The notes under the pieces were generated by a model. That model saw only the letters and a program-made list of their open reading frames with translations. It did no database searches and was not told the DNA's origin. Below are positions 7,813-55,260 of a stretch of 64,000 nucleotides of DNA, piece by piece. Every line of letters begins with the position of its first letter. Positions within the stretch are counted from its first letter, which is position 1. Source of the stretch: Fimbriosthenelais zetlandica (lineage: Eukaryota). The position numbers were made by a program, and so were the translations under genes. The stretch spans positions 31,186,001 to 31,250,000 of the forward strand of contig OZ365110.1 in the NCBI GenBank assembly GCA_977030845.1, in the 5' to 3' direction.

Positions 7813-10800
7813 GGGTATTTTACTGGTCAGCGGTCAGATCAGGAGGAGGCTGATCCCGATGGGACGTCCTCTAGTGGTCAAATGGGGAAGGTGGTCAATA
7901 ATGCATCAATAAAGTCGGTGTGGATAGCAGAGTCTAGGCCAAGTAATGGCTGGACATTACAAACATCATTGACCGCACTGCCCAGATGGAAAAGCCAGCT
8001 GAAAATCACCCCTGGCAAGTGGTAATGATTTATATGCCTTCTCTTCAAGCATACTGAAGCTTTGAATTTAAAAAACGATTTTTTAAAGGGCAAAAACCGG
8101 AACCTTGAATTGGAAATTCAAGGAGGCCCGCGCACGACCCCGTTTTTCTTATACTACTGGGTGGCTGAGTTATTGTTGGAAGGCACATTTTAGTGGCAAA
8201 AAGTCGAGTCTCGAAGTGCCATCAATAACGGATGGGGAGTACATTTGTATACCGAGCAGGTTGCACATCGATTATCAATCCTACCAAAACAAGTTGGATT
8301 TGGCCTGGAGAAGATAAACGTGAGCGGGTGATGTTTTATTCGGTTAGCGTGAGCAGCTCAGGCTTACTGGAGGACAATAATGATGAGGCCTCTGTCCAAG
8401 AGTGGCTCCCTGGAGACGCAGAGGTTCACACATATTGTACCGGTGGTCCCAGTGGGCACACCCGTCACCTGAGCCCGACCTGTCCTCCTGTCCTCTCAAC
8501 CATCACCCTCAACCCATCCGTCACGACCCTGGAGGTGGGTTTTCACCGCCTGGAAAGCCCCTCGAGGGACCTTCACGTCACCCCATGACACCACCCGCCT
8601 TTCTCTCTCCTTCCCTCCCTCTTCTTCCCCAGCGTTTTCATGTACATTTCATGACATTTTGTCCACGCCGTTGGAAGCGTCCTCTGACGGCACCTAGCTT
8701 TGTCCCTGATTATCGCTCACTCGGGGGAATACTCGGCGCGGTCCCCGGATGAAGTTCCCCCTGACGACATTTCACACCTCGCTATTTTGCGCGCGCAATC
8801 CTGGATTTTGTCCCGCTTGGCATTGGGCTCAAAATACAAACAACCGACGGCTTTAGTCGGCAGAAAACTAATGGAAATGCCGGCCGGAGTCTGTTGAAAC
8901 ATGTCACGTTGATTAAAGGAAGGGAATCCTGATGCATTTCTGGGAAATTGGAAGTTGTGACGTCTTAAACTCGAAACTTGAAACGAGTAAAGAATTCTCC
9001 ACTCTGAATGGCAACTTCAGCAGATATTCAAACTTAAATTTATGTATTTATCCATCAGAAATCTAGAACTAGTCGGCATTTTAACCTTTTTGTATTTGTT
9101 CTGAGAGAAATATCAGGAATTTCGGACATCTTTTTTCCCAGACAGCCCATCTCATTGCATTGAGAGTGAGAGCCATATATCATAGTGAACTGGCAATGAT
9201 GAATAGATGCCAAAACTAATGTACATTATTGACGACTTTGTCCTGCGCTTAATCAATTATGGAATGGCATGGTAGGCCAAAGCCAAGCGGTGGCCAAATA
9301 CCGATAAACTAGTCCCAGAGGACCAAATCTCCAATCAGCCAAAATTCACTCCACATTCCAGAACTTTGGCCAATTCGGGCTTTTATCTGTAGTTTATTTA
9401 AGAACTAATTATGCAATACATTACTGGCTATTTAAAATTATTTCATTTTTAGAGTTCTATATTTCCCTTTTTCTGAGGTTAGAACAAAAGCCCCATTCAC
9501 CTATTCGGTAATCATGTGAATGACCCGGACCTAAAACCTTTGACCTTAACGTTAGAGTAGTTTTAGTCTGACTATGCATGTTGCACTCTCCTCCCCTGGC
9601 GATGGTGGAGGTGGGGGGTTTGGCAATGACTTGGTACAGGCAGAAAACCCCACTGCCTTCCTCTACCCGACCGAAAGAATAGCTCAGAGCTCCTCGCTTC
9701 TGCTCAATGAATATTTGAGGGTGACGTTTAACATGAGAGTAGTGGTCTTGTCCTCAGGGAACACGCCGGAACTCCCAACGGACGCCCGAAATGATAACGC
9801 ATGATAAAGAGATTTGGCAGGCGGTAGAGGAGCGGGGGTCCCTTAGGGATTCCACTACATCAAACATTTACTCCGCTCACCTGTAATCAGCCAGCGACAA
9901 GGCTACCTTAACTGTACTCTTTAAAGTTTAACGTGGACCGCACTCGGGGAATTGGTGGCCGGGGGTCCGTTGGGAATGAGGTAAAAGCTATTGAGTGTCA
10001 GGTGAGTGTAAAGCACTCAAGCGTGGAGGATGTATAGATGGCTCCACCAACATGGGTAGAGAGAGAGTAGTCGTGATTTGAGATCATGGAAATGATATCC
10101 CAATATGGATGAAAATATTACCTATATACATGTATAATTCACATTATATATAGTTCTGGGCGATAATGAAGGCAATCTTTGAACAAGCTGCAAAATCTCT
10201 AGTGTCAGATTTAGCTCATTCCATTATCCTCCACATTCTATTTTTCACTTAGATATAATACCTTTTTGAATTCTTCTTTATAACCTATATTGTCAATGAC
10301 ATATAAAGGAGGATATATGCAAACAACGCCCGTTGGTGTGTTTGAAAAGTGAAACAACATAATACAGTGGAAGACGCATTTCAAAGTGAACACTGTTACT
10401 TTAAGCCAGTCTTTTACTATTTACTGACACAAGATCTTGATAACATATCGAGGGAATTAACTTCAAACGAAGTCAATAACAGCCTCCAACACATCCTTCT
10501 TGGAATAATGAAGATTTACAATACAGCGTCACACAGGTGTGTTGATTTTCACTGTCTACTCGCGTCACCGAAGCGTCGCCTTTGTGACTGATCGAGCAGT
10601 GTCTCAACAATCGATCGATTACACTTAGTTAATCGGGTAACGCCCTTGGTATACACATCTCCTTTTACATCTCCTATGCTTTCTCAACCTTCCCCTCCTC
10701 TGTTACATTTGCTTATATCATTGGGCGTTCAAAGTAAGGCTTTCTCCCCTCTCTGTCCTCATTTACATTTTAAACGCTTCTGAAACTTCACCTGTCAGCC

Positions 10801-17388: not shown

Positions 17389-17398
17389 TCCCCGGGGA
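17389..17398. promoter_or_regulatory. Single perfect COE/EBF palindrome
   Basis: TCCCCGGGGA matches TCCCNNGGGA. Confidence 0.35.
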
Positions 17399-25000: not shown

Positions 25001-25189
25001 ATTAGGAAAGGGCGTATTATGAACCCTTATTTGATAACATATCATTGTTATAGGGAGACATTAGCAAGAACTAGCAAGGTGGGCCTGGCTTATTCAAGAA
25101 CCCATGCACATCAGACTAAGAAGTGGATGAAGGAGCTGGAAATCCCAGGCGGCCGGGGGCTCCAGCTAGGAGGAGGGTCGACTGCTCGA

Positions 25190-25221
25190 TCCCGGGGGAG
25201 GGGCGGGTAGATCCCGTGGGA
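25190..25221. promoter_or_regulatory. Tandem COE/EBF binding palindromes
   Basis: TCCCGGGGGA (25190-25199) and TCCCGTGGGA (25212-25221) both match TCCCNNGGGA perfectly. Confidence 0.55.
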
Positions 25222-28200
25222 CTCGGCTCCGATCCGGGGCCCTGCTCGACCGCCGAGACTGGAGGTCACAAGGCCTCATTTCCTGACAAAGACCTGGAGC
25301 AGGCCGTGGAGGAATTGTATAGAACTCCTCCAAGGGACTAGGGTCGCCTATAGCCTGTCAGCAATGCGGGGGAGTTAGGTCTAAGTCTCCAGAGGCTAGG
25401 ACGGCCGTCTAGTCTCCAGCTCAATGAGCTTAAACAGCTGAGAGTTTGTAAAGATAGAGAATGTAGAATATAGAGCAATTGCATATTACAGAACTGAGTA
25501 CAGTATAAGGACTGTAAAGATGGGGGAGTTATTTTCAAAACATTTGAGTGAGAGAAAGAGGGGTGAAATCAGACAAGAAGTAGACATATAAGGCCAGGAA
25601 GGGCAGATCTCAGAACTAGATCCTCTAATTCATCAGCGCATGATTCAAGCAATCCAATTTAGTGATTATTTCACCCAGAGCGCATCAACACGGATCGAGC
25701 AGGCTTTATGTACCCGGCCCCACTGCTAATTGAATGTTGCCCGAGCTAAGAAAACACTCCCCATCCGTCTACACGGCACTCCGACCGAAAATAACAGCAA
25801 AAGTTACACCAATACACCATTAGGGAATTGGAATCGGTCATCTCGATGAAAGACACTTGTATAGGTAAAGGGAAACTGATCCGGCTGAATTATCCGAGCA
25901 CGGATGGAAGGGTGAGTTGAGTGTGGACAACATTGATGGAATAGTGATTGTAATTTCCATTGTGTTTCTGGATAGGGATGGTCTATAGAAGAATGCAGAT
26001 ATTATCTGGACAAGGCACTATTATGGTAATGTGCAACGCATAAATTGAGCAGTAGCAACTTAATTCAGAGCCTCTAGGTCATTTAATTTAATTGCATGAA
26101 GGAAGATACCATCTTAAGTACATGCATTTGACACTCTAGAACGATGTGTGTGGGGTGTAAATAGGAAAATGGGGTTGGTTATTACTGAATGGAATAGTGG
26201 GGAAAGGTTGAGGCGAGAGAAAGAGATGAAAAGGGAAATTTTTAGCTGGTTTGTAGAAGCAGACGACATTTTGATGTGAATTGGCGGGGAAAGTGTGGGT
26301 CGCCAGTAGGTGGCGATAAATCGCCATATTGCGGGTTGGTGGCACTATCAACATAACGTTTCCGTGGTGCTTTATGGGTCAGCCAATGGCCCAACTTGCC
26401 CTTTCCGGATGCCTACCTCAGGATGGCGATAGAAATGACCAGTCTTCTGAAAATGGGGCCAAACTATCAGGCGGCCCCATATGGGCTAGAGCTCAAATTA
26501 ACAAGCTTACAGGGCTTAGGGAGGTTGGCTGGCTCTGCCAAGGCCCTTCCAAGGCTCGATCCCTATCTACAAGCACTGGATGCCATTTTCATCCCACCCA
26601 CAACCACTGATACAGTGGCCCTGGGTAATAGAATAACAGACAGACGCTATCAGCATCAACATCTGCAGCAAAAATGAATTAGCAATATTAGTATACTGAC
26701 AGATAGCCTGACAGTCATGTAGCTGGCGTCTGAGGTGTCTATGTGTAGCCTTGTTATTACAAATAAATGATCCGAGTCTGGTTTGTGGTCATTTTTACAT
26801 GAACAAATGGATTGTTAACACTGATATCAATCAGATAAATATGAGGTTTTATCATATATACCATCCCATTAACTTACCCTATTATCGCCCACCATAGCTA
26901 AGGCCTACACATTTATTATGACACATTTTTATGGCACTTCTAAGAGTGGGACAAAGATAATGGTAACGATGATGAACAGACGTGTAACCTGGCCTCTCTC
27001 TCACAGACAAACGGCGGCCATTTTGAAATGAAATGAGAGCGGCCTCAACAAGCCACTTGAGTGCGTCCATCCGTCAAACCTCATTTCCGCTCGGCACGTG
27101 ACAATGCCTCTGCGTTATCCCCACCTCGGCAGCCTCTGATAGGCCGGGAAATGAAATCAGTTAACAGCATAACAGGCAGAGTGAATTCTGTTAGCTGGTG
27201 TTATCGGCAAGAGGAATTGGCCAATAAAGCGCAATGCTTGTTGGTTCGGTGAAATGGTTGGCTCGCAGGAAGAGTGGGGGATGGTTGACTTACAGAAGTT
27301 CATTATATTTGTCCAGGCCGGAATTCCCAGGGGGCCAGCCAGTATAGGTCAATGGTCACAGGTGGGAAAGGAACATTAGAGAATTGAAGAGCACTAGAGG
27401 GGTAGGTCATGTTGTCATCCGTCAATGACTAGGGGCATGTTGTATTGTGGGTTCATGATTCTGTAATTACTGAGGATCAAATAGCACTTCTCACTTAACC
27501 AAACACTGCTTCATTGGATTAGCATCAGAGCTTGCCTACAGGTGCGAGAATAATTGTAATCATATCATGAAATGGACGCAGTCATTTGATCTAGACAAAA
27601 TGCTATGAGAAACGTATTATATGAAATCAAGATTGATTTTAATCTTTTAATTATTTTGGATGCTAGACTCTAACATGAGGTCTGTTGGTACAGTGCATGC
27701 CACTGTCTATAGCTTGTTTGTATACCAGAAAAAATCGCCAGCCCTGCCTGCGTGATCATGAACTTTGCTTTAATTAATTTTTGATTGCGTGAGATCAAGC
27801 ATTTGGCAGAGAGCCATACAGACTTGTCGAACACTCCCGATTTGGTCTCAACCCAACGGTAAACTGGCCAGCAGATCCTTGTTCAATTACATGTGTTGGG
27901 GAGCTCAATATAGGCATGTGATTAGCATGGAGCTACACATGTTCATGTGCCTCTGACATGGCCTTGATTACAAGATGCACGTGAGTCATTCCCTGCCTCC
28001 CAACTAACACACACATTCACACACACTGGAAGGATGGATGCATGACGTGAGGAAGCTTATCATTGGGGAACACCTGTGTAGGTTCATTAACCCGTTGATG
28101 TTTTAATTGGCAGTAGGCTGGATATCTCCCCTGCCAACCCTGTCTCTCTTTTGCAAAGCCCAGTCAACTTCATGCATGGTACCTTCTTCGGTCCCAATTC

Positions 28201-34200: not shown

Positions 34201-35020
34201 AGTCATTGGCCCCTCCAAATACCCATACTATCCGATGCTATCTCCCACTATTGTAATGCCACCACAGGATGTGATGTGAGTGGAAAAAATCTACTTCTGC
34301 TTAGATTGGGGAATTGTCCCATGGCATCATCAATATCACCCCTTCAGATGGAGATATACATATAAACACCCTCCTCGGGGGGTGTGGACTATGCAGGCAC
34401 AGCCCTCCCTTTCCGTTTTCACCCCTGGATTTTGCTACCACCCCCCGCCAGAATCCTCTCCGAGTGAGTTGATTGTAGATTCCGCTCCAGCTATTCGCCT
34501 ATAATTGCATCCATACAGAATCATCGGGGTGTCCGAAACCCGTCCCCGTTTTCTATCATCGTCTGAATATTTTAAAAGGTCTTATGTAATGCGTTACATG
34601 GACGACGGGGATAGCATAGCACCCGGGGCAGAGATGTCTGACCTAGTCGGCAGTATCACTAACAAGTCAGAAATAGTAAACTTAACATGATACAAAGATT
34701 CACAGTGGTGAGCACCGCTGGAGACCCTCACTCGCTAGCCCTCCCCTTCAAACCAAACCCCACGACACTCCCTATAATGAAATAGAAGAAACAAGCCACT
34801 CAAAACAACAAAGAACCCCTAGTGTTGTCCCAAAGATGAGCTCGGTTCAGCCCCCCGCTGCAACAAAATGCCAAACAAACCAACCCCCTAAACGTAATCA
34901 CTTATAATGAAACTCGTAACCCTGACTCAGACTGGCTGAAGATTGAAGGAGGAATTTTGCTGAAAAAGATGGAGGTTGGATGAGTGGAGAAGAATAGGTG
35001 ATTATTTGAGGACCACCTAC

Positions 35021-35089
35021 CTGTCAATGATGACTGGGTCTGAGGGGGTTTCATTCCTGTTTCCACAACTCTTCTTATCACAGCAACGA
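35021..35089 (-). CDS. coe: COE/EBF coding exon 6 ([23 protein letters not shown]), completing the H-X3-C-X2-C-X5-C zinc knuckle
   Basis: Contains the invariant [23 protein letters not shown]. Acceptor tttctgctccag, donor GTAGGT. 69 nt. Confidence 0.98.
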
Positions 35090-35380
35090 CTGGAGCAGAA
35101 ATAATGAAGGTATAAGATCAGAGAGGCGGGAGGCAGTGAGGCGTAAATAAATATCAACTTGTTGGGATGAGAGAGAGAATCGGGAGCTCTGATCACTTTA
35201 CTGTGATACGAGATTAAGTCTGTACTGGTAAACAGGGGGAATTTCTTATATCATTCTTAATTAGGATATTCACTGTCCTCATTCAAACCTTTGATAAAAA
35301 TTGAATTTCGTCAAAATTGTGACATCTTCATTTAACGGACAATGAGTAGGGTAAGATTAAAGGAAATACTTGTAGACCTA

Positions 35381-35533
<153 letters not shown>

Positions 35534-41717: not shown

Positions 41718-41773
41718 CGTTTTGGCGACCGAGTCAATGAGGCGTATGTACAAGTCCTGTTCTTGTCTAACTC
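41718..41773 (-). CDS. coe: COE/EBF coding exon 4 (G-VRQEQDLYIRLIDSVAKT)
   Basis: Matches the conserved R(T/Q)EQD(L/F)Y(V/I)RLIDS. Acceptor ...ggaccaaag, donor GTGAGT. 56 nt. Confidence 0.96.
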
Positions 41774-44700
41774 CTTTGGTCCGATCATCGCAGCAGGCAT
41801 GAAAAAAAGATAAGCCACAGATTAGTATTGTTGTGTAAAACCATTTTAAAGGGGATGAATATTTAAAAACGTAAACAACAGTGTGATATTTTCCTATTCA
41901 GTGCAATAGTTCAATGGTTCATTTCTGATGATGTGCATGCATGCATATACTCTATTCTGAAATTACTATATGGCAAAATGCATTTATCAATTGTGCAGTT
42001 TAAAATTCAGTGGTTATAATTACATATATTTAATTCTGAACCTAAATCTTAATTATAGCACCTCATTGATTATAAAACATTGATTCCTATCATAGAAATG
42101 AGCGTTTTATTGTGAGGACTACCCCATGAAACCGAAACTTTGAGATCATATGGGGAATGAGTATAAGTGTTTCCTTTTAGCCCACGAGTAATGTCAACAA
42201 TCGAAGTACAAATTTGATTCCCACATTCCTAGATTCCTTACGGGTCGTCTTTATAAGCTACATGTGGCAAAAACAGAGAACCTTCTGGCACATCAATAAA
42301 GACACCGCCAGGCATATCAGAAAACAATAATTTGTGCTTTAGATGCAATAATTGGGTGCCAAGCTCGAGGCTAAACTACTTGCTACCCGATTCAACAGCC
42401 TTCCAGTAATTCAATTATTTGGGTTACGCAAAGCGACCGAGAGCTTCAAGTAGGCAATGGTTGGCACTACATAATCCCGCGTTGGCATCAATTCTGGCTC
42501 TTAATTTGCCCCATTGAATGCTTGATATTTCCCCTTCCGGCCATGCAAAAAGGGGCGCTTTTTAGACTGATTTCATGGATTTTTGGAGTGATTTTGGCTG
42601 CATTGACTGACTGAGGGGTATAAATCCATGGGTTAAATAGTGAAGGCTTGCTTTGAGGAGGAGGAAGTGTATGGGGTTGATTTTTCAGGGCTGGAGATAG
42701 AGGGGAGAGGCAGCAGGGTAAGTGGAGATAGGAGAAGGAATCAATAGGTCAGTGTAATGTGGGCGATAATAGGCTTTTGAAGTGAGCGATGCTGGGGGAG
42801 AGATGGCCCAGTCAGATTTGGTCAGCGATCGGCAGAGTTAGCCCTCAAGCACAAACTCCACACTGTAAAACTAGAATAGAATCTGGTTTGACTTGATATA
42901 AAGTGTGAAACGGTAAACTGTGCCTTGAAACGCGAAGAATCCATTCTGTAATGATTCTATATCAATTATGTCAGTTTGAATTCTAACATTGGTCTATGCC
43001 TATTATTCTCGCAATCATAGCCTTGGATCAATTCTCCAAATTTCCACAGTGATTTTACTAATTTTCCACGTTTTACAGAATATTTCAGAGTTTTAGAGTG
43101 TGACCACTGATCAAGCATCTCAAAAGTGCCGATGCCGAGTGGTGCTTTAAAAGCCTGAAAGATTAGAAGGCAGAGTTTGGTAAAGTAATACCAGGATTAT
43201 CCCAGCCTCACCCACTCCTCAAATAGAGTTAGGCTTTCTTATTAATCAACTTAAACTTCTTCAAGACCAAAAAAGCTTTAATTATAGACCTGTATGATGA
43301 TATTCCATCATCCGTAGGGCCTGCCCATAATGATTTGTAATGGATTTATCCTATTTTACTGCAAAATATCGAGCCCCTTTCACATTGAGGATGAAGTAAG
43401 GTTGTGTGGACTATGCCATGTATTGCCTATTATGGTTTGCGTGTGTGAGACCCACTTTAGCATACAGACTAGCGCGCCAGCAATGCATCTTACTTCCCAC
43501 GGCCAGAGCATCTCACGCCCGAGCTGTTTCCACAGCCCGTGTTTATATGGATTAATGTCCCGACCATAGATTGACATACATGTGTTGTGTGCTAGAAGCT
43601 GGCATTGTGGGTGCACGGGATCACACTCATAATATTCCATGACAGATGGCCAGCGGGTGACCCCCGCGAGCCGGGCTATTGTCGGCAGGGTATGGCGGGA
43701 TGAAGACGGGTGGAGGCGGGGAGAGAACCACCCCCGCTCTCCCAGCTGCTGAGCCACTCCCATTCATCCACCAACGGCTTCGGTGGGTGGCTGGGAGAGC
43801 GCCCGTGTAGGAAGCTCGTGCCACCGCCTTTGCGGCTGCGTCTCCGGTAGAGCTAGCCCTGGCAACCCCGTCCTCCCGTGGGTTACTCCAACCCGCGTCA
43901 AAAGCCTCTAATCCTCCAGCTTTTCACTCACGCCCCCAAATCTTCATCAATTATTCAAATAATATCAAAATGGAATTGATTCACGCGAAACCGGGTCAAG
44001 GAATGAAAGATTGTCCTCTACTAAATTCCAAGGTTCCATTCAGATGGTTGGTAATAGAAAGAGTGAAATGCTGGGAGAGAGCAGGTTGGATCTTCAGGGC
44101 CACAGATGGTTGATGGGTCGGCGAGCCGTCTGCCCGTCTGCCATCCTCTTCTAGTTTATGAATAAACATGCTCTCCCGACCGGTCACCACTTAGGAGCAA
44201 GATGACCAACCCAACAAGGATTTATAAGCCTTTCCTTTTAGTCCCCAAATATAGCCAGCGACCAAATCATTCCTTGGATCTTTTTCCTTTGCTTTTAGCT
44301 TAAAAAACAGCCATTGGTGATAGCACAGAGAGGGTCTTGCTATTTTGGCTTTATGAATAAGACCCTTGTGGATAATTGTGTATATCTCATTAATTTGGCT
44401 GTCCAATTAGTAGGCTATCAGCACATCGGGGCCTGATGTTCTCCCATTAAGGGCTGAGCGATATGAACCACCAGTGTGTCAATGGAGTGCCCGAGATGCA
44501 TACATTATTCTCTGACAGTATGTAAACATTGGCGCCCGCGCCCTCCCGGCACGGGCAATGCACGGGCGACCGGCCCACCATATCAACCCATTCAATGTCC
44601 TATTGATACACCACTTAAGGAACCCCTCAATAACAAAAATATTATCCCCTAAAGTGTCTGATGTCGAAAAAGAGACACTGTAGCTGAGGAGTGGATAGAA

Positions 44701-46244
44701 ATAAAACATTCAAAGGGTTTATCTGCGGGACTAGCGGTGGAATTTGATATTCTGTTGGCATCTATAGTATTATTTATCAGCATCCTATTGCATATATGGT
44801 GATATCGGATGTTCCTCGCTAAATAATAATGTTCAAAAGATCCAGATTGAATCATAGAATATTGGCGCGTGCGAGGTCTGTGCGCGCGCCCACCCAATCG
44901 ATTGCATGTATATTTCATCAGGCTCGTTTCAACACTATTTCAACAAGGTTATAGTGTCTAATTACATTGCCAATACACCATACAGTGCCAGCAAGGTTGT
45001 ATGTTTGGCTTTGCAATCAGTCCAAAGTCCATCAATCATTGGCCAGGGCTTTGGTCCTTGAAGTTCGGTGTCAAGTGCAAATACCGTCAAATACAATTTG
45101 GATTTCGAGACCCCCGAAATATATTCGGCCTGTAACCATATGTGATATATAGTATGAAATAAGATATCCAATAGACGTGTTTAAAATTTCCCTCCCATTG
45201 CGAATAGAAAGAGAATATTGAAACAGAATGGAAAAAATCAATGTCGTCATGTCCCTACTAATGATATTACACAACAGGAGAAGTGAATAATGGTCTTAAT
45301 CATAACAGCCATGCGCGACAAGCCTGAAGCAAACCCGGGCTTATGTTCCTTTCCAATAGTGATAAATTACCAGTCTGCCCTGCCCAGATGAATTTTACAC
45401 TTCTCCATTTTGAATGAAATAAATTATTCCCGGGAAGATTCAAGCTCTCTCTTAATGCAGTATACATCTCGTAAATTGTCACCCATTGCGGGATAATACT
45501 ATGCATTCCAATATAAGGAAAGGTCTATTGTTGTAGGCCTAAGTAGCTGACTCCATTCCCCCTAAAACCCTTAATCTATGGGCGGGGTTGACTTATGATT
45601 TTGAATAGATGCCCATGTCAGTTAATGTATATCTTTCAATCAAGATTATTTCGGACCGAGCGCGTTTGAATACCAAACGGTCTTGTGGCCATATTTTTTA
45701 AGCTGACGAGGAAAAAAAGAAGCAGAAAGTCCATAAAAGCTATACCCCCACCCGTACTAACCCTTAGCGTGGGGTATTCTGTCCGAGACATACCCCACCT
45801 GCAACTGGTCGGTGAATCTGCCACTTGAGTGGTCATTTATTGGAGGGAGTTGAGGGTTGAAATCGGATTTCTGGCCGTGTGATGGGAGAGAAGATATGCG
45901 GGTGTTTTCGTGAGGTGCACGCCCGTGGCACGTGCGACACAATGTCAATTCTCCTTTTTGTAATCAATGATGATTTGATCGGGGAGAGAGAGGGCGGAGT
46001 TGGGAGTTAATGAGGCAGAATATTAGCCAGATACGTCCAAAAATCCTCCATATTGAGTTATAGCAATAATGTACTCCGGGGAAGTAGAGTTTCTGATGTC
46101 CTTCAGTGAGTTTTTGCTCGGTTTTCAGTCCTTTCTGAGCGTACATAGAGGTTCCTCGGGGTCATATTTTTTGCCCCTTTAAGAGTTTTCCATACAAGTT
46201 TATCATGAAGAATAAAATAAAATGAATTAGGGAAAATAACTTAC

Positions 46245-46308
46245 CGTTGGCGTATAGCAGTTGTAGCCGGTAGTGTATTCCATTATTTGTTTTGGTGGCC
46301 GAATCCTC
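46245..46308 (-). CDS. coe: COE/EBF coding exon 3 (EDSATKTNNGIHYRLQLLYAN-G)
   Basis: Matches the conserved KTNNGIHYRLQLLY(S/A)NG. Acceptor ctctaattgcag, donor GTAAGT. 64 nt. Confidence 0.98.
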
Positions 46309-46881
46309 CTGCAATTAGAGGTAAACAAAACAAAGAGATAAATATCTCAGGTGAGAATAAGCGGAGAGGTGTTACCTCTCTTGTTAGCGAGGTGTCGCTA
46401 GTGTGGCGGTGAGGTTTTAATTGCGCCATATGGCCTGTGGGCTTACTGAATGTAATTCTTTGTAAACGATAACAAAAACCTTGTCGCCCTACCTTTCTTT
46501 TTTTATTCTTACCTGTTCTGCTCCTTGTGTTACCTGTATATAATAATTAGTTAACACACACACGCGTGTTAACACATGCGAATGGGCGCGTGGGCGAAAT
46601 CACCCACAATAGATGCAGAAGTATTTTACATCTGCCATGATCATTTGTGCTTTGATCATATTATTTTTAATTGGAAGAAAATTTAGTTACTTGATTTGCA
46701 AAGTAATTATATGATTCATGAATTATATTTCCATTGGACAATTGGCGAAATACTTCGCAGTTACCAGATAAGAATGGGGAAAGCTTATCATTCACGAATA
46801 CTTATCCGTTAATTGAATTGGACAAATTCAAAATACAAGAATTTAATATTGATAATAAACTGTCAGTGGAGCTTCTCTTAC

Positions 46882-47035
46882 CACATCTTTTTCAACAAAA
46901 TCGATGTAAGCTGTCCTTTCTACTTCCACTGGCTGTCCGTGTTTGTCATAGAGTGCGAGAACAAAGTGGAAAAAGTTACTTTTCCTCAAGTTGCTTGGTG
47001 GCTGTTTCTCAAAGTGCGCCCGCCCGAGTCCAACA
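46882..47035 (-). CDS. coe: COE/EBF coding exon 2 ([52 protein letters not shown])
   Basis: Contains the COE signature [26 protein letters not shown]. Acceptor ttttccag, donor GTAAGA. 154 nt, in frame with exons 1 and 3. Confidence 0.98.
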
Positions 47036-47852
47036 CTGGAAAAAGAAATGAAAAGTCCGATAAAATGGAAGTTTAAAATTAAAGATGTGAAAGACTCCTA
47101 TGACGATATAGGCCCTATCTGTAATAAGCAAAATAGATGAACGGATCCCAAGATATATTAGAAAGTCCCGTTGTTTAAAAGAAAAAGGGTGTATAATGTA
47201 CTAGGTCTCCCAATGTGATTTTAGTTGATATGTAGAACATTAAAGGTAAGGGACCAGCACCTCCTCCGTGGCCTCAGCTAAATAAAACCTAATTCTGACG
47301 GGGGACCACTGGGCTAGTGTGCTAATTGCGTTGAGACTAAATAACCCGAGCCCTTCGAGAATAGTTAGTGGGGCATTGGGAGGGCCTTTTGGCACTCTTC
47401 ACATGGCGCCTTGGTCGCGGTTAAATAAGTGATACTGTTGGGATTTGACAGGGGAAGCCGGGGTCCGGCGGCAAGGGTATAAGGAGGCGAGTGAGGGATA
47501 AGGGTCCACCACAAATTTGGCAGGTGAACTGGCGGGTTTTTACAGAGAGAAGTAAAAATACTGGTAAACTGATGAATTTTAACCTGATTTGAACACGTGT
47601 TTGGATATAGGAGGCAATGATATGAGGCAAAGTGGAAAAACGGGCAGGCATGAATAAACGAAAAGGAAAGTTAAAGTTCAGGGGGGAAAAGTTATCCACT
47701 TTCTTTACGGGTACCTATGCATTGATGTATCCTTTTTCGAGAAAGAAAGTAGAAACGGGAATGATTTAGAGATACCAGACAAAGAGAAAAAGGTGAAAGG
47801 GGATAATTTCAACATTTGATCGGAAAAATCTGAAAATGGAAAATAAACGCAC

Positions 47853-47986
47853 CTGGCCGTGGAGGTTTGATCGACCACTGAGGGCTGCATCCAGTTGCGT
47901 ACAGTCCCCAGTTGGGTTGATAGGGGTTCCTCCTTCAGGCTGGTTACCGGCCCTCGGGGCTGAATACTATCCTGTATCCCGAACAT
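47853..47986 (-). CDS. coe: COE/EBF transcription factor, coding exon 1 (MFGIQDSIQPRGPVTSLKEEPLSTQLGTVRNWMQPSVVDQTSTA)
   Basis: The N-terminus closely resembles the EBF start MFGIQES...KEEPL...WMQ. ATG at 47986. Donor AG|GTGCGT at 47852, phase 2. The ORF-track extension to 47705 is intron read-through. Confidence 0.95.
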
Positions 47987-49019: not shown

Positions 49020-49560
49020 CCAATGATGTTGCACATCCTTGTGATTATCAAAGTGGTAAAGAAGTCCAGTTGGAAAAGATTCTTGGTCACTGATCGCCCG
49101 TGTACGCGTAAACGTTGAACGAGAGCGTACTGAGAGGCTTGGTCTCTCGGGCCTTGCTTTTGTTGCTATCAAGTGCTGCTTGCACTGTTGGGCTATTCCC
49201 TTCAGCATCCCAGCCCCCCGCGGGACCCAACCTCTGCCAGCCCAACTCCCGCCGTGCCGGCCAATCAACGCGCCCCGAGACCTCATTAATATTCATGAGC
49301 TGCCATATAAGGCGCACGGTCGGCACCTCAATGCACGAGCGACCAATGGGAGCAAAGCAGAGGGGGAAGAACGAGCGGTGTTCCGCACATGAGATTATCA
49401 TGATAATTTTCAGTTACATTGACAATATACCGAGCACATGGTGTTTGTGTTTATGTGTGGGCACCCGCGAAAAGCCCCGCCCACATGCGTTCCTCTGTGG
49501 ATCCCTCCACGCGGGTGGATCCGGATCGGCGGCGCTGGTCGGGGACTCTAGATCACTTCT
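49020..49560. promoter_or_regulatory. CpG-rich proximal promoter region with CCAAT boxes
   Basis: CCAAT at 49020, 49261 and 49343. High CpG density from about 49090 to 49560, immediately upstream of the inferred TSS. Confidence 0.6.
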
Positions 49561-54013: not shown

Positions 54014-54429
54014 GATGTTTCTGTATAGAAGGGTCAGGGTGATCTGAGTTTACCAGCACATCCAGCTCTGTATGCTGGGACTGCTTCAGTAATGACATCA
54101 TACTTCGGTTATTAATATAATATTGTATGTACCAAATAATTAAAAACTACAATTAAAGAATTTACATAATATCCCTTATTATGCAACAAATAATTGGCGT
54201 GAATCAAATACATACCACCTAATTAGTATATCATTAATTTTTGTTAATAATTAATTAGAAGTAATTTTAGTTTATACAGATATAACTAAAATACACCAGC
54301 CGAGATAAGAGGCCTACGTTCGATCCCAAGAGAGAGAAAAGAAGAAGAAAATGTTAAAAACACATCAAATCCAGATATGCCATACAGAGATATGGAGAAT
54401 ATACACAATTCCACCAAGAATCCCACAAT

Positions 54430-55260
54430 GAATTTTAGTGGAACAGTTCGCCTGTGACGTCGGTCGCTCCTCCTGGTGCGGCCTCGGACGGTCCCGGCGG
54501 GAGACCCGAGGGACGAGGGCTACCGGAGATCCCGAGCGCTAAATCCCAGGGGCGCTGGCGTCCAGTAATTAGGTCCCGGCTCATCAGAACTGGAGAGAAC
54601 GTTCTCATTGTCTTCCCCACTTAATTCCTTTTTATTATCACCCGGGCCAATGATATAAACGCTGTTGAAATCTCTGTCGCGGCGATATCTGATATCTCTA
54701 TGTAAGAAACAACAGGCGAGGTGTCCCTGTCGTCTGCATTCCCCGCGGGATTTCCCCAGTTCTGCCCAGGAATGGCGGGAAATCTACAGCTGTCAATTCT
54801 CACGTCGCGCGCGCTCATAACGCAATTGATGCTCTGATTAGAGTTGTGAATTAATCTTTTAAGAGGGAAACTTCTTCTCCAGAGAGTCCTTTTGGGCCCT
54901 TCTTGCGGCTCATGAAAGGGAAACATTGTTTCTTTCCAGTTAGTCAACCATGAAGTGGAGAGAATCCCTCTGTCTGCTCGGAGGAGGACACTTTTCTTGG
55001 CAGATGTTTAAAAACTTTTCCTCTCTGCGGGATTCGATTGCTTCGTGTCCCTCGCGTGTTTCCAAAGTGACGTAACATCTCTCAGACACCCTATCATTTC
55101 AAGCGGCGACGTTTGATTGGTGTGATATTTCCAGTTGCCTCCCGTTTCAGAAGGGAATTTAATCGAGGTGAGAGATAGTTGCTTTTCAGCGTGACTCTAT
55201 AACAATAAGTGAATCTATTGTAAGAAAGAAATTAGAAAGAATCGCTTCAAACGGCAGCAC
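54430..55260. promoter_or_regulatory. CpG-rich upstream regulatory block
   Basis: Very GC-rich at 54430-54600. Contains GGGATTTCCC (NF-kB-like), TGGCGGGAAA (E2F-like) and TGACGT half sites. Confidence 0.4.

Follow-up and report, generated by a model that had tools for sequence, protein, structure and literature searches.

In C. elegans, COE sites in the promoter of unc-3 and in its first two introns repress the gene, as demonstrated by ChIP-seq and CRISPR mutation (PMC13192591). In Drosophila, the collier CRM col2.3-0.9 contains a Col site without which expression is not maintained in one cell type (PMC4512700 and references therein). The consensus bound by Col in vivo, as obtained by ChIP, is CCCnnGGGA, and AT flanks raise COE affinity without being essential (PMC4512700). 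In the mouse, an EBF1 site in the distal promoter of Ebf1 gives positive feedback on the gene (reviewed in PMC4312928); an earlier note on the DNA described here had cited Ebf1 as autoregulated. The COE core is given as TCCCNNGGGA in PMC4312928, PMC4512700 and PMC13192591. A COE dimer closes like a clamp around a single 10-bp palindrome, and a loop makes contacts beyond it (PMC4312928). A published study of annelid coe expression (PMC3117877) contains no cis-regulatory analysis.

Self-regulation of COE genes through cognate sites in promoters and introns is already known as a kind. To our knowledge, direct regulation of this type has been shown in mouse, fly and worm only. COE/EBF factors are dose-sensitive terminal selectors, of which EBF3 syndrome and unc-3 provide examples.

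The stretch of DNA analysed here, referred to below as the window, is 64 kb long, and all positions are given in window coordinates. Pfam matches to COE1_DBD and COE1_HLH identify a coe gene on its minus strand. To locate the exons, COE proteins of lophotrochozoans were mapped to a 154-kb region around the window. Exon 1, which holds the start codon, lies at 47861–47986, exon 2 at 46885–47037, exon 3 at 46243–46311, exon 4 at 41721–41777, exon 5 at about 35384–35455, and exon 6, which carries an intact zinc knuckle, at about 35020–35091, all on the minus strand. Exon 7 (DBD) follows on the same strand about 15.7 kb before the start of the window, with further exons to about -33 kb. The gene spans 83 kb, and intron 6, which starts just below exon 6 and is 50.7 kb long, is its largest intron.

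The exons that encode the DBD, with the zinc knuckle among them, are intact, and the domain is about 90% identical to the COE proteins of other animals. The COE protein of this species is therefore expected to recognise the same palindrome. The best protein matches come from a spliced metatranscriptome contig and from an mRNA of Platynereis dumerilii, both encoding COE, with 79–85% identity in the variable first exon, which marks the animal as annelid-like. A 5.7-kb contig from a relative could be aligned over exon 2 only, at 78% nucleotide identity.

The earlier note had reported two perfect COE palindromes inside this gene, and both the sites and their location are confirmed. Site A (TCCCGGGGGA, 25190–25199) and site B (TCCCGTGGGA, 25212–25221) are exact matches to the 10-bp palindromic core, and each is directly preceded by GA. 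Their starts are separated by 22 bp, which leaves a spacer of 12 bp. Because exon 6 is at about 35020–35091 and exon 7 lies before the start of the window, the pair is in intron 6. The distance down to it is 9.8 kb from exon 6 and about 22.8 kb from the ATG. With 10.5 bp to the helical turn, 22 bp corresponds to about 2.1 turns, which is near a whole number. The extended SELEX optimum, ATTCCCNNGGGAAT, is matched by none of the four half-site flanks (GA/GG for one site, GA/CT for the other), and the central dinucleotides GG and GT of the two sites are not known to be the commonest ones in published EBF matrices.

One close parallel is unc-3, which like the present gene is a single invertebrate COE gene with cognate TCCCNNGGGA sites in its own promoter and introns, several of which act together. 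The repression of unc-3 has been established by ChIP-seq and by mutation with CRISPR, whereas the present sites are candidates. The unc-3 gene is also compact, its intronic sites falling in the first two introns, in contrast to the present pair, which is spaced by 22 bp and lies in a 50-kb intron 6. The Col site of collier is likewise in the gene's own locus, but it is one imperfect upstream site (TGTCNNGGGA) that acts positively, in contrast to the two perfect intronic sites found here. The Ebf1 element belongs to the promoter of a vertebrate paralogue and is not an intronic pair; it resembles instead the conserved promoter block of the present gene (49141–49268, discussed below), this being a likeness of description.

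We propose that the pair is a candidate COE autoregulatory module, positive or negative in its action, within coe intron 6. We regard this as probable, if only modestly so.

The earlier note had placed the pair in a GC/CpG-rich patch, and this is borne out. The segment 25130–25270 has 70% GC and contains 13 CpG, with a CpG o/e of 0.77, compared with 43% GC and a CpG o/e of 0.60 for the whole window. It forms part of a single-copy island (25120–25288), which is the sole place in the 64 kb where a 140-mer reaches at least 70% GC. The wider stretch 25100–25420 has a GC content of 0.61 and a CpG o/e of 0.61, which is marginal with respect to the criteria for a CpG island (200 bp or more, a GC content of 50–55% or higher, and a CpG o/e of 0.6 or higher). 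The degenerate copies of the core noted at 25143 and 25233 are present but weak. The first has two mismatches to the core and the second has four, with only CGATCCGGGG in common with CGATCCCGGG.

The 12-bp spacer contains GGGGCGGG (25200–25207, plus strand), identified by eye, which we take to resemble a GC box of Sp/KLF type. Because this core fills the spacer, the island may in truth serve other factors. It would then be a regulatory or CpG-island-like element, bound by Sp/KLF proteins at GGGGCGGG and perhaps by a Su(H)-like factor at CGTGGGA, and the COE palindromes within it would be incidental. The retention of CpG in what is the GC-richest stretch of the window is consistent with such a role, as are the marginal place of 25100–25420 within the looser island criteria and the position of the GC-box core exactly between sites A and B. 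However, two perfect COE sites are improbable even at the dinucleotide content of the patch itself (P = 3e-4), 11 other places in the window equal or exceed the patch in CpG per 200 bp, and the motifs concerned were assigned by eye only. We consider this explanation an improbable one.

Runs of G5, G4, G3 and G3 extend over the spacer and site B (25200–25221) and were seen by eye as a possible G-quadruplex on the plus strand.

Another explanation is that the patch derives from a transposon or other dispersed GC-rich repeat, from a tandem array now decayed, or from a small RNA or coding sequence of which it is a remnant, and that the two sites are copies and did not arise independently. A 12-mer is indeed common to sites A and B, with 11 of its 12 positions identical, and 21 bp further on there is a third sequence of this kind, CGATCC(C)GGGG. 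Nevertheless, searches of the 447-Mb genome with 451 bp, with 6.5 kb and with a 34-mer (up to 3 mismatches) returned only the self match, using a method that skips very common words. On these searches, the patch is not a copy of a dispersed GC-rich repeat; such an origin was among the findings that the earlier note had named as counting against its reading. TRF finds no tandem repeat at the patch, and masking the two 12-mers leaves no signal at a lag of 22; if a 22-bp duplication gave rise to the pair, the sites alone have survived. The likeness of TCGATCCC to a B box suggested a tRNA or SINE, but ARAGORN and Rfam were both negative. A 72-aa ORF over the patch has no protein homologue, and neither this ORF nor the other three that were scanned has a match in Pfam. 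Folding z-scores of -0.6 to -1.3 indicate no excess of RNA or DNA structure, and the GC-rich patches of the window are unrelated to one another. The reading of the patch as a repeat or remnant, which we think very improbable, is already largely refuted. The patch is also not a copy of the promoter block, since the promoter profile described below has no match there.

Single COE sites are not rare. The earlier note had expected well under one perfect site in the window, which is too low: dinucleotide shuffles give 1.18 per 64-kb window, and the density in the genome (5840 perfect sites in 447 Mb) gives 0.84. A reversed control motif occurs 5950 times in the genome, so that the COE core is not the commoner of the two. 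The window holds three perfect sites, starting at 25190, 25212 and 17389.

A close pair, as the earlier note had supposed, is rare, and it is so under all three nulls that were applied. In dinucleotide shuffles of the patch, at least one perfect site was found in 3.4% of trials, and at least two in 3e-4. Among the 255 other palindromes of the form 4-NN-4, four have a pair 10–40 bp apart in the window. In the genome as a whole there are 54 pairs of COE sites with a gap of 0–30 bp, many of them inside satellites, compared with 139 for the reversed control motif; this corresponds to a chance of about 0.006–0.01 of finding one in the 83-kb coe gene. Depending on the null, the figure is thus roughly 0.03–1.6%.

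Some satellite arrays have units of 27–33 bp, each with a perfect TCCCNNGGGA. They include arrays at C21:9085033-9085465, C10:12477453-12477615 and C11:55025593-55025701, and a large part of the COE pairs counted in the genome is due to such arrays.

These numbers bear directly on the possibility of chance, namely that two short palindromes rich in CC and GG fall by coincidence in the most GC-rich part of a 50-kb intron, and that COE is idle there. About one perfect site is expected per window in any case, similar pairs exist in the genome for both the COE core and its reversed control, and a genome contains hundreds of transcription-factor genes, so that a 1% coincidence is to be expected somewhere. 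The lack of optimal AT flanks at sites A and B points in the same direction. Against this stand the rarity of the pair under each of the nulls and three further observations, on the rest of the gene, on the same intron in other species, and on the promoter, which are taken up below.

Cognate sites within the coe locus exceed the background rate. The 154 kb examined contain six perfect sites, every one of them within the 83-kb gene body and not in the 71 kb of flanks. For the gene body, between 1.6 (first-order Markov model, P = 0.007) and 1.9 (third-order, P = 0.03) are expected, and TCCC ranks first among 64 composition-matched palindromes. This excess, which argues against chance, is confined to perfect sites: those with one mismatch number 44 in the gene vs 41 in the flanks, and the absence of enrichment among near-consensus sites is in favour of chance. 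Intron 6 by itself holds four perfect sites, compared with 1.37 expected, at a nominal P of just 0.05. Sites A and B, in this intron, are the strongest cluster of perfect COE cores here.

The coe loci of five other lophotrochozoans, each with 10-kb flanks, were compared with this one: the nemertean Tubulanus and the molluscs Lottia, Solemya, Tegillarca and Pinctada. Gene structure is conserved among the species, the large intron being intron 6 in each of them. The five loci together contain 10 perfect COE cores, whereas 1.50 are expected from a third-order Markov model (Poisson P = 4e-6). Among 256 palindromes, the COE core is the third most extreme in these loci, after the TATA and ATAT microsatellites. 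Tubulanus has no perfect COE site in 61.6 kb. All five of the intragenic perfect sites in the molluscs are in intron 6, compared with 0.56 expected (P = 2.8e-4), and they are single sites, not pairs.

Alignment to the orthologous introns, which the earlier note had suggested, gave a divided result. The patch could not be aligned to intron 6 of the molluscs (for example Lottia) or of the nemertean Tubulanus, the exons being the only parts of these loci that align to the window; on the other hand, perfect sites are enriched in the same intron. The intron-6 sites of different species have no similarity in their flanks, and a metagenome scan for the two-site pattern gave 20 matches, all of them unrelated tandem repeats. 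That the patch fails to align in other phyla favours an accidental pair; the excess seen independently in intron 6 of the four molluscs speaks against one.

In the coe promoter/5′ region, a conserved block at 49141–49268 (minus strand), identified in a six-species alignment, contains ATTGG, a COE-type site, a second COE-type half site, GCAACAAAAGC and ACCCGAGAGA. It is orthologous to blocks that lie 290–416 bp upstream of the ATG in the four molluscs and the nemertean. When the other five species are used to build a profile, it has one significant match in the 154 kb examined here, at 49141–49268 on the gene strand (E = 5.8e-7), and the block is single copy in this genome. Its distance upstream of the ATG is 1.2 kb in this genome and 0.3–0.4 kb in the other five species.

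The first COE-type site of the block (TCCCGCGGGG, 49216–49225, minus strand) has one mismatch, and at this position the site is perfect in all four molluscs. The second (49197–49206, minus strand) is 19 bp downstream and retains the right half, GGGAAT, while its left half is degenerate. In each mollusc the perfect site lies 341–416 bp upstream of the ATG and is followed 19–21 bp later by a second site in which the GGGA half is intact. The Tubulanus promoter has two sites with one mismatch each, 17 bp apart, at -307 and -290. All six species thus have two COE-type promoter sites 17–21 bp apart. Because this distance varies from 17 to 21 bp, a strict helical phasing is not conserved.

Tegillarca and Pinctada, which are the two pteriomorph bivalves of the set, have a TATA-like run (GGGATATAA, GGGATAAAA) directly after the perfect promoter site, so that binding of COE might compete with the basal machinery, or position it. 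In the coordinates of the loci compared, the perfect promoter sites are at L012:9585 (Lottia), L042:9631 (Solemya), L043:9660 (Tegillarca) and L044:9647 (Pinctada).

The excess across species, in promoters as well as in intron 6, indicates that most of the perfect COE cores present in the coe genes of lophotrochozoans are no accident. Chance does not predict conserved paired sites in the promoter, and with all of this taken together we think it rather unlikely, though not negligibly so, that sites A and B are accidental.

The candidate autoregulatory module may therefore be restated in terms of a mechanism. The two palindromes would form a homotypic COE-binding module in coe intron 6, in which a COE dimer would occupy each 10-mer in cells that express COE. 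Both cores, with 12 bp between them, can probably be occupied simultaneously. Such occupancy would alter the output of coe, and the module would be one of several cognate sites through which COE feeds back on its own transcription. The earlier note's proposal of an autoregulatory element is in part strengthened by the present analysis: the cores are perfect, single copy and within the gene's own body, the pair is rare, and there is an excess of sites across species. The flanks, of which none of four is optimal, count against it, as do the central dinucleotides, the lack of enrichment among one-mismatch sites, the modest nominal P for intron 6 of this genome, the absence of perfect sites from the Tubulanus locus, the occurrence of the mollusc intron-6 sites singly, and the failure of the patch to align across phyla. 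The note's further proposals, a positive sign and cooperative binding on the same helical face, are conjectural, and in C. elegans the intronic sites of unc-3 are repressive.

The spacing of 22 bp resembles the 17–21 bp of the promoter sites, which suggests that two dimers side by side may be the working unit. The recurrence of a spacing of roughly two turns makes a two-dimer unit plausible. More tentatively, a pair of COE-type sites about two turns apart could be an ancestral unit of coe self-regulation in Lophotrochozoa, fixed in the promoter and recurring in intron 6 here; we view this broader idea as possible but on the doubtful side. If it is true, the ancestral paired unit implies cooperation between dimers of COE proteins, of which we know of no description.

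As judged from the alignments and site counts, the paired sites within a conserved promoter block, and the way in which intron 6 is used repeatedly, are provisional findings of this analysis. If the pair is real, direct COE self-regulation reaches the third great bilaterian branch, and the element responsible is compact (32 bp) and open to mutation. Together with the promoter block, it would hint that pairing of sites is an ancient arrangement, and one that can be tested.

A number of other COE-like sites occur in and around the gene. Besides sites A and B, the gene body has four further perfect cores, at 17389–17398, -5271, -27700 and -28648, two of which are in intron 6. The one at 17389–17398 (TCCCCGGGGA) is the third in the window, lies in intron 6 and has GA before the core. 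Read on the gene strand, all four of the perfect sites in intron 6 have GGGAT, and three of them have GGGATC. Also in intron 6 is a pair of sites with one mismatch each, TCCTCAGGGA and TCCCAACGGA, 22 bp apart at 9751–9782 (starts at 9751 and 9773), which is weak and was picked out post hoc. It belongs to a cluster at 9740–9990 that includes a third one-mismatch site at 9966 and, near 9840, TCCCTTAGGGA with a 3-bp centre; the cluster has no significance once the whole window is scanned. Upstream of the gene, a GC-rich patch at 54420–54608 contains two more COE sites with one mismatch, and the 10-mer of the promoter site recurs 5.5 kb further upstream than the promoter, as CCCCGCGGGA on the plus strand at 54741–54750.
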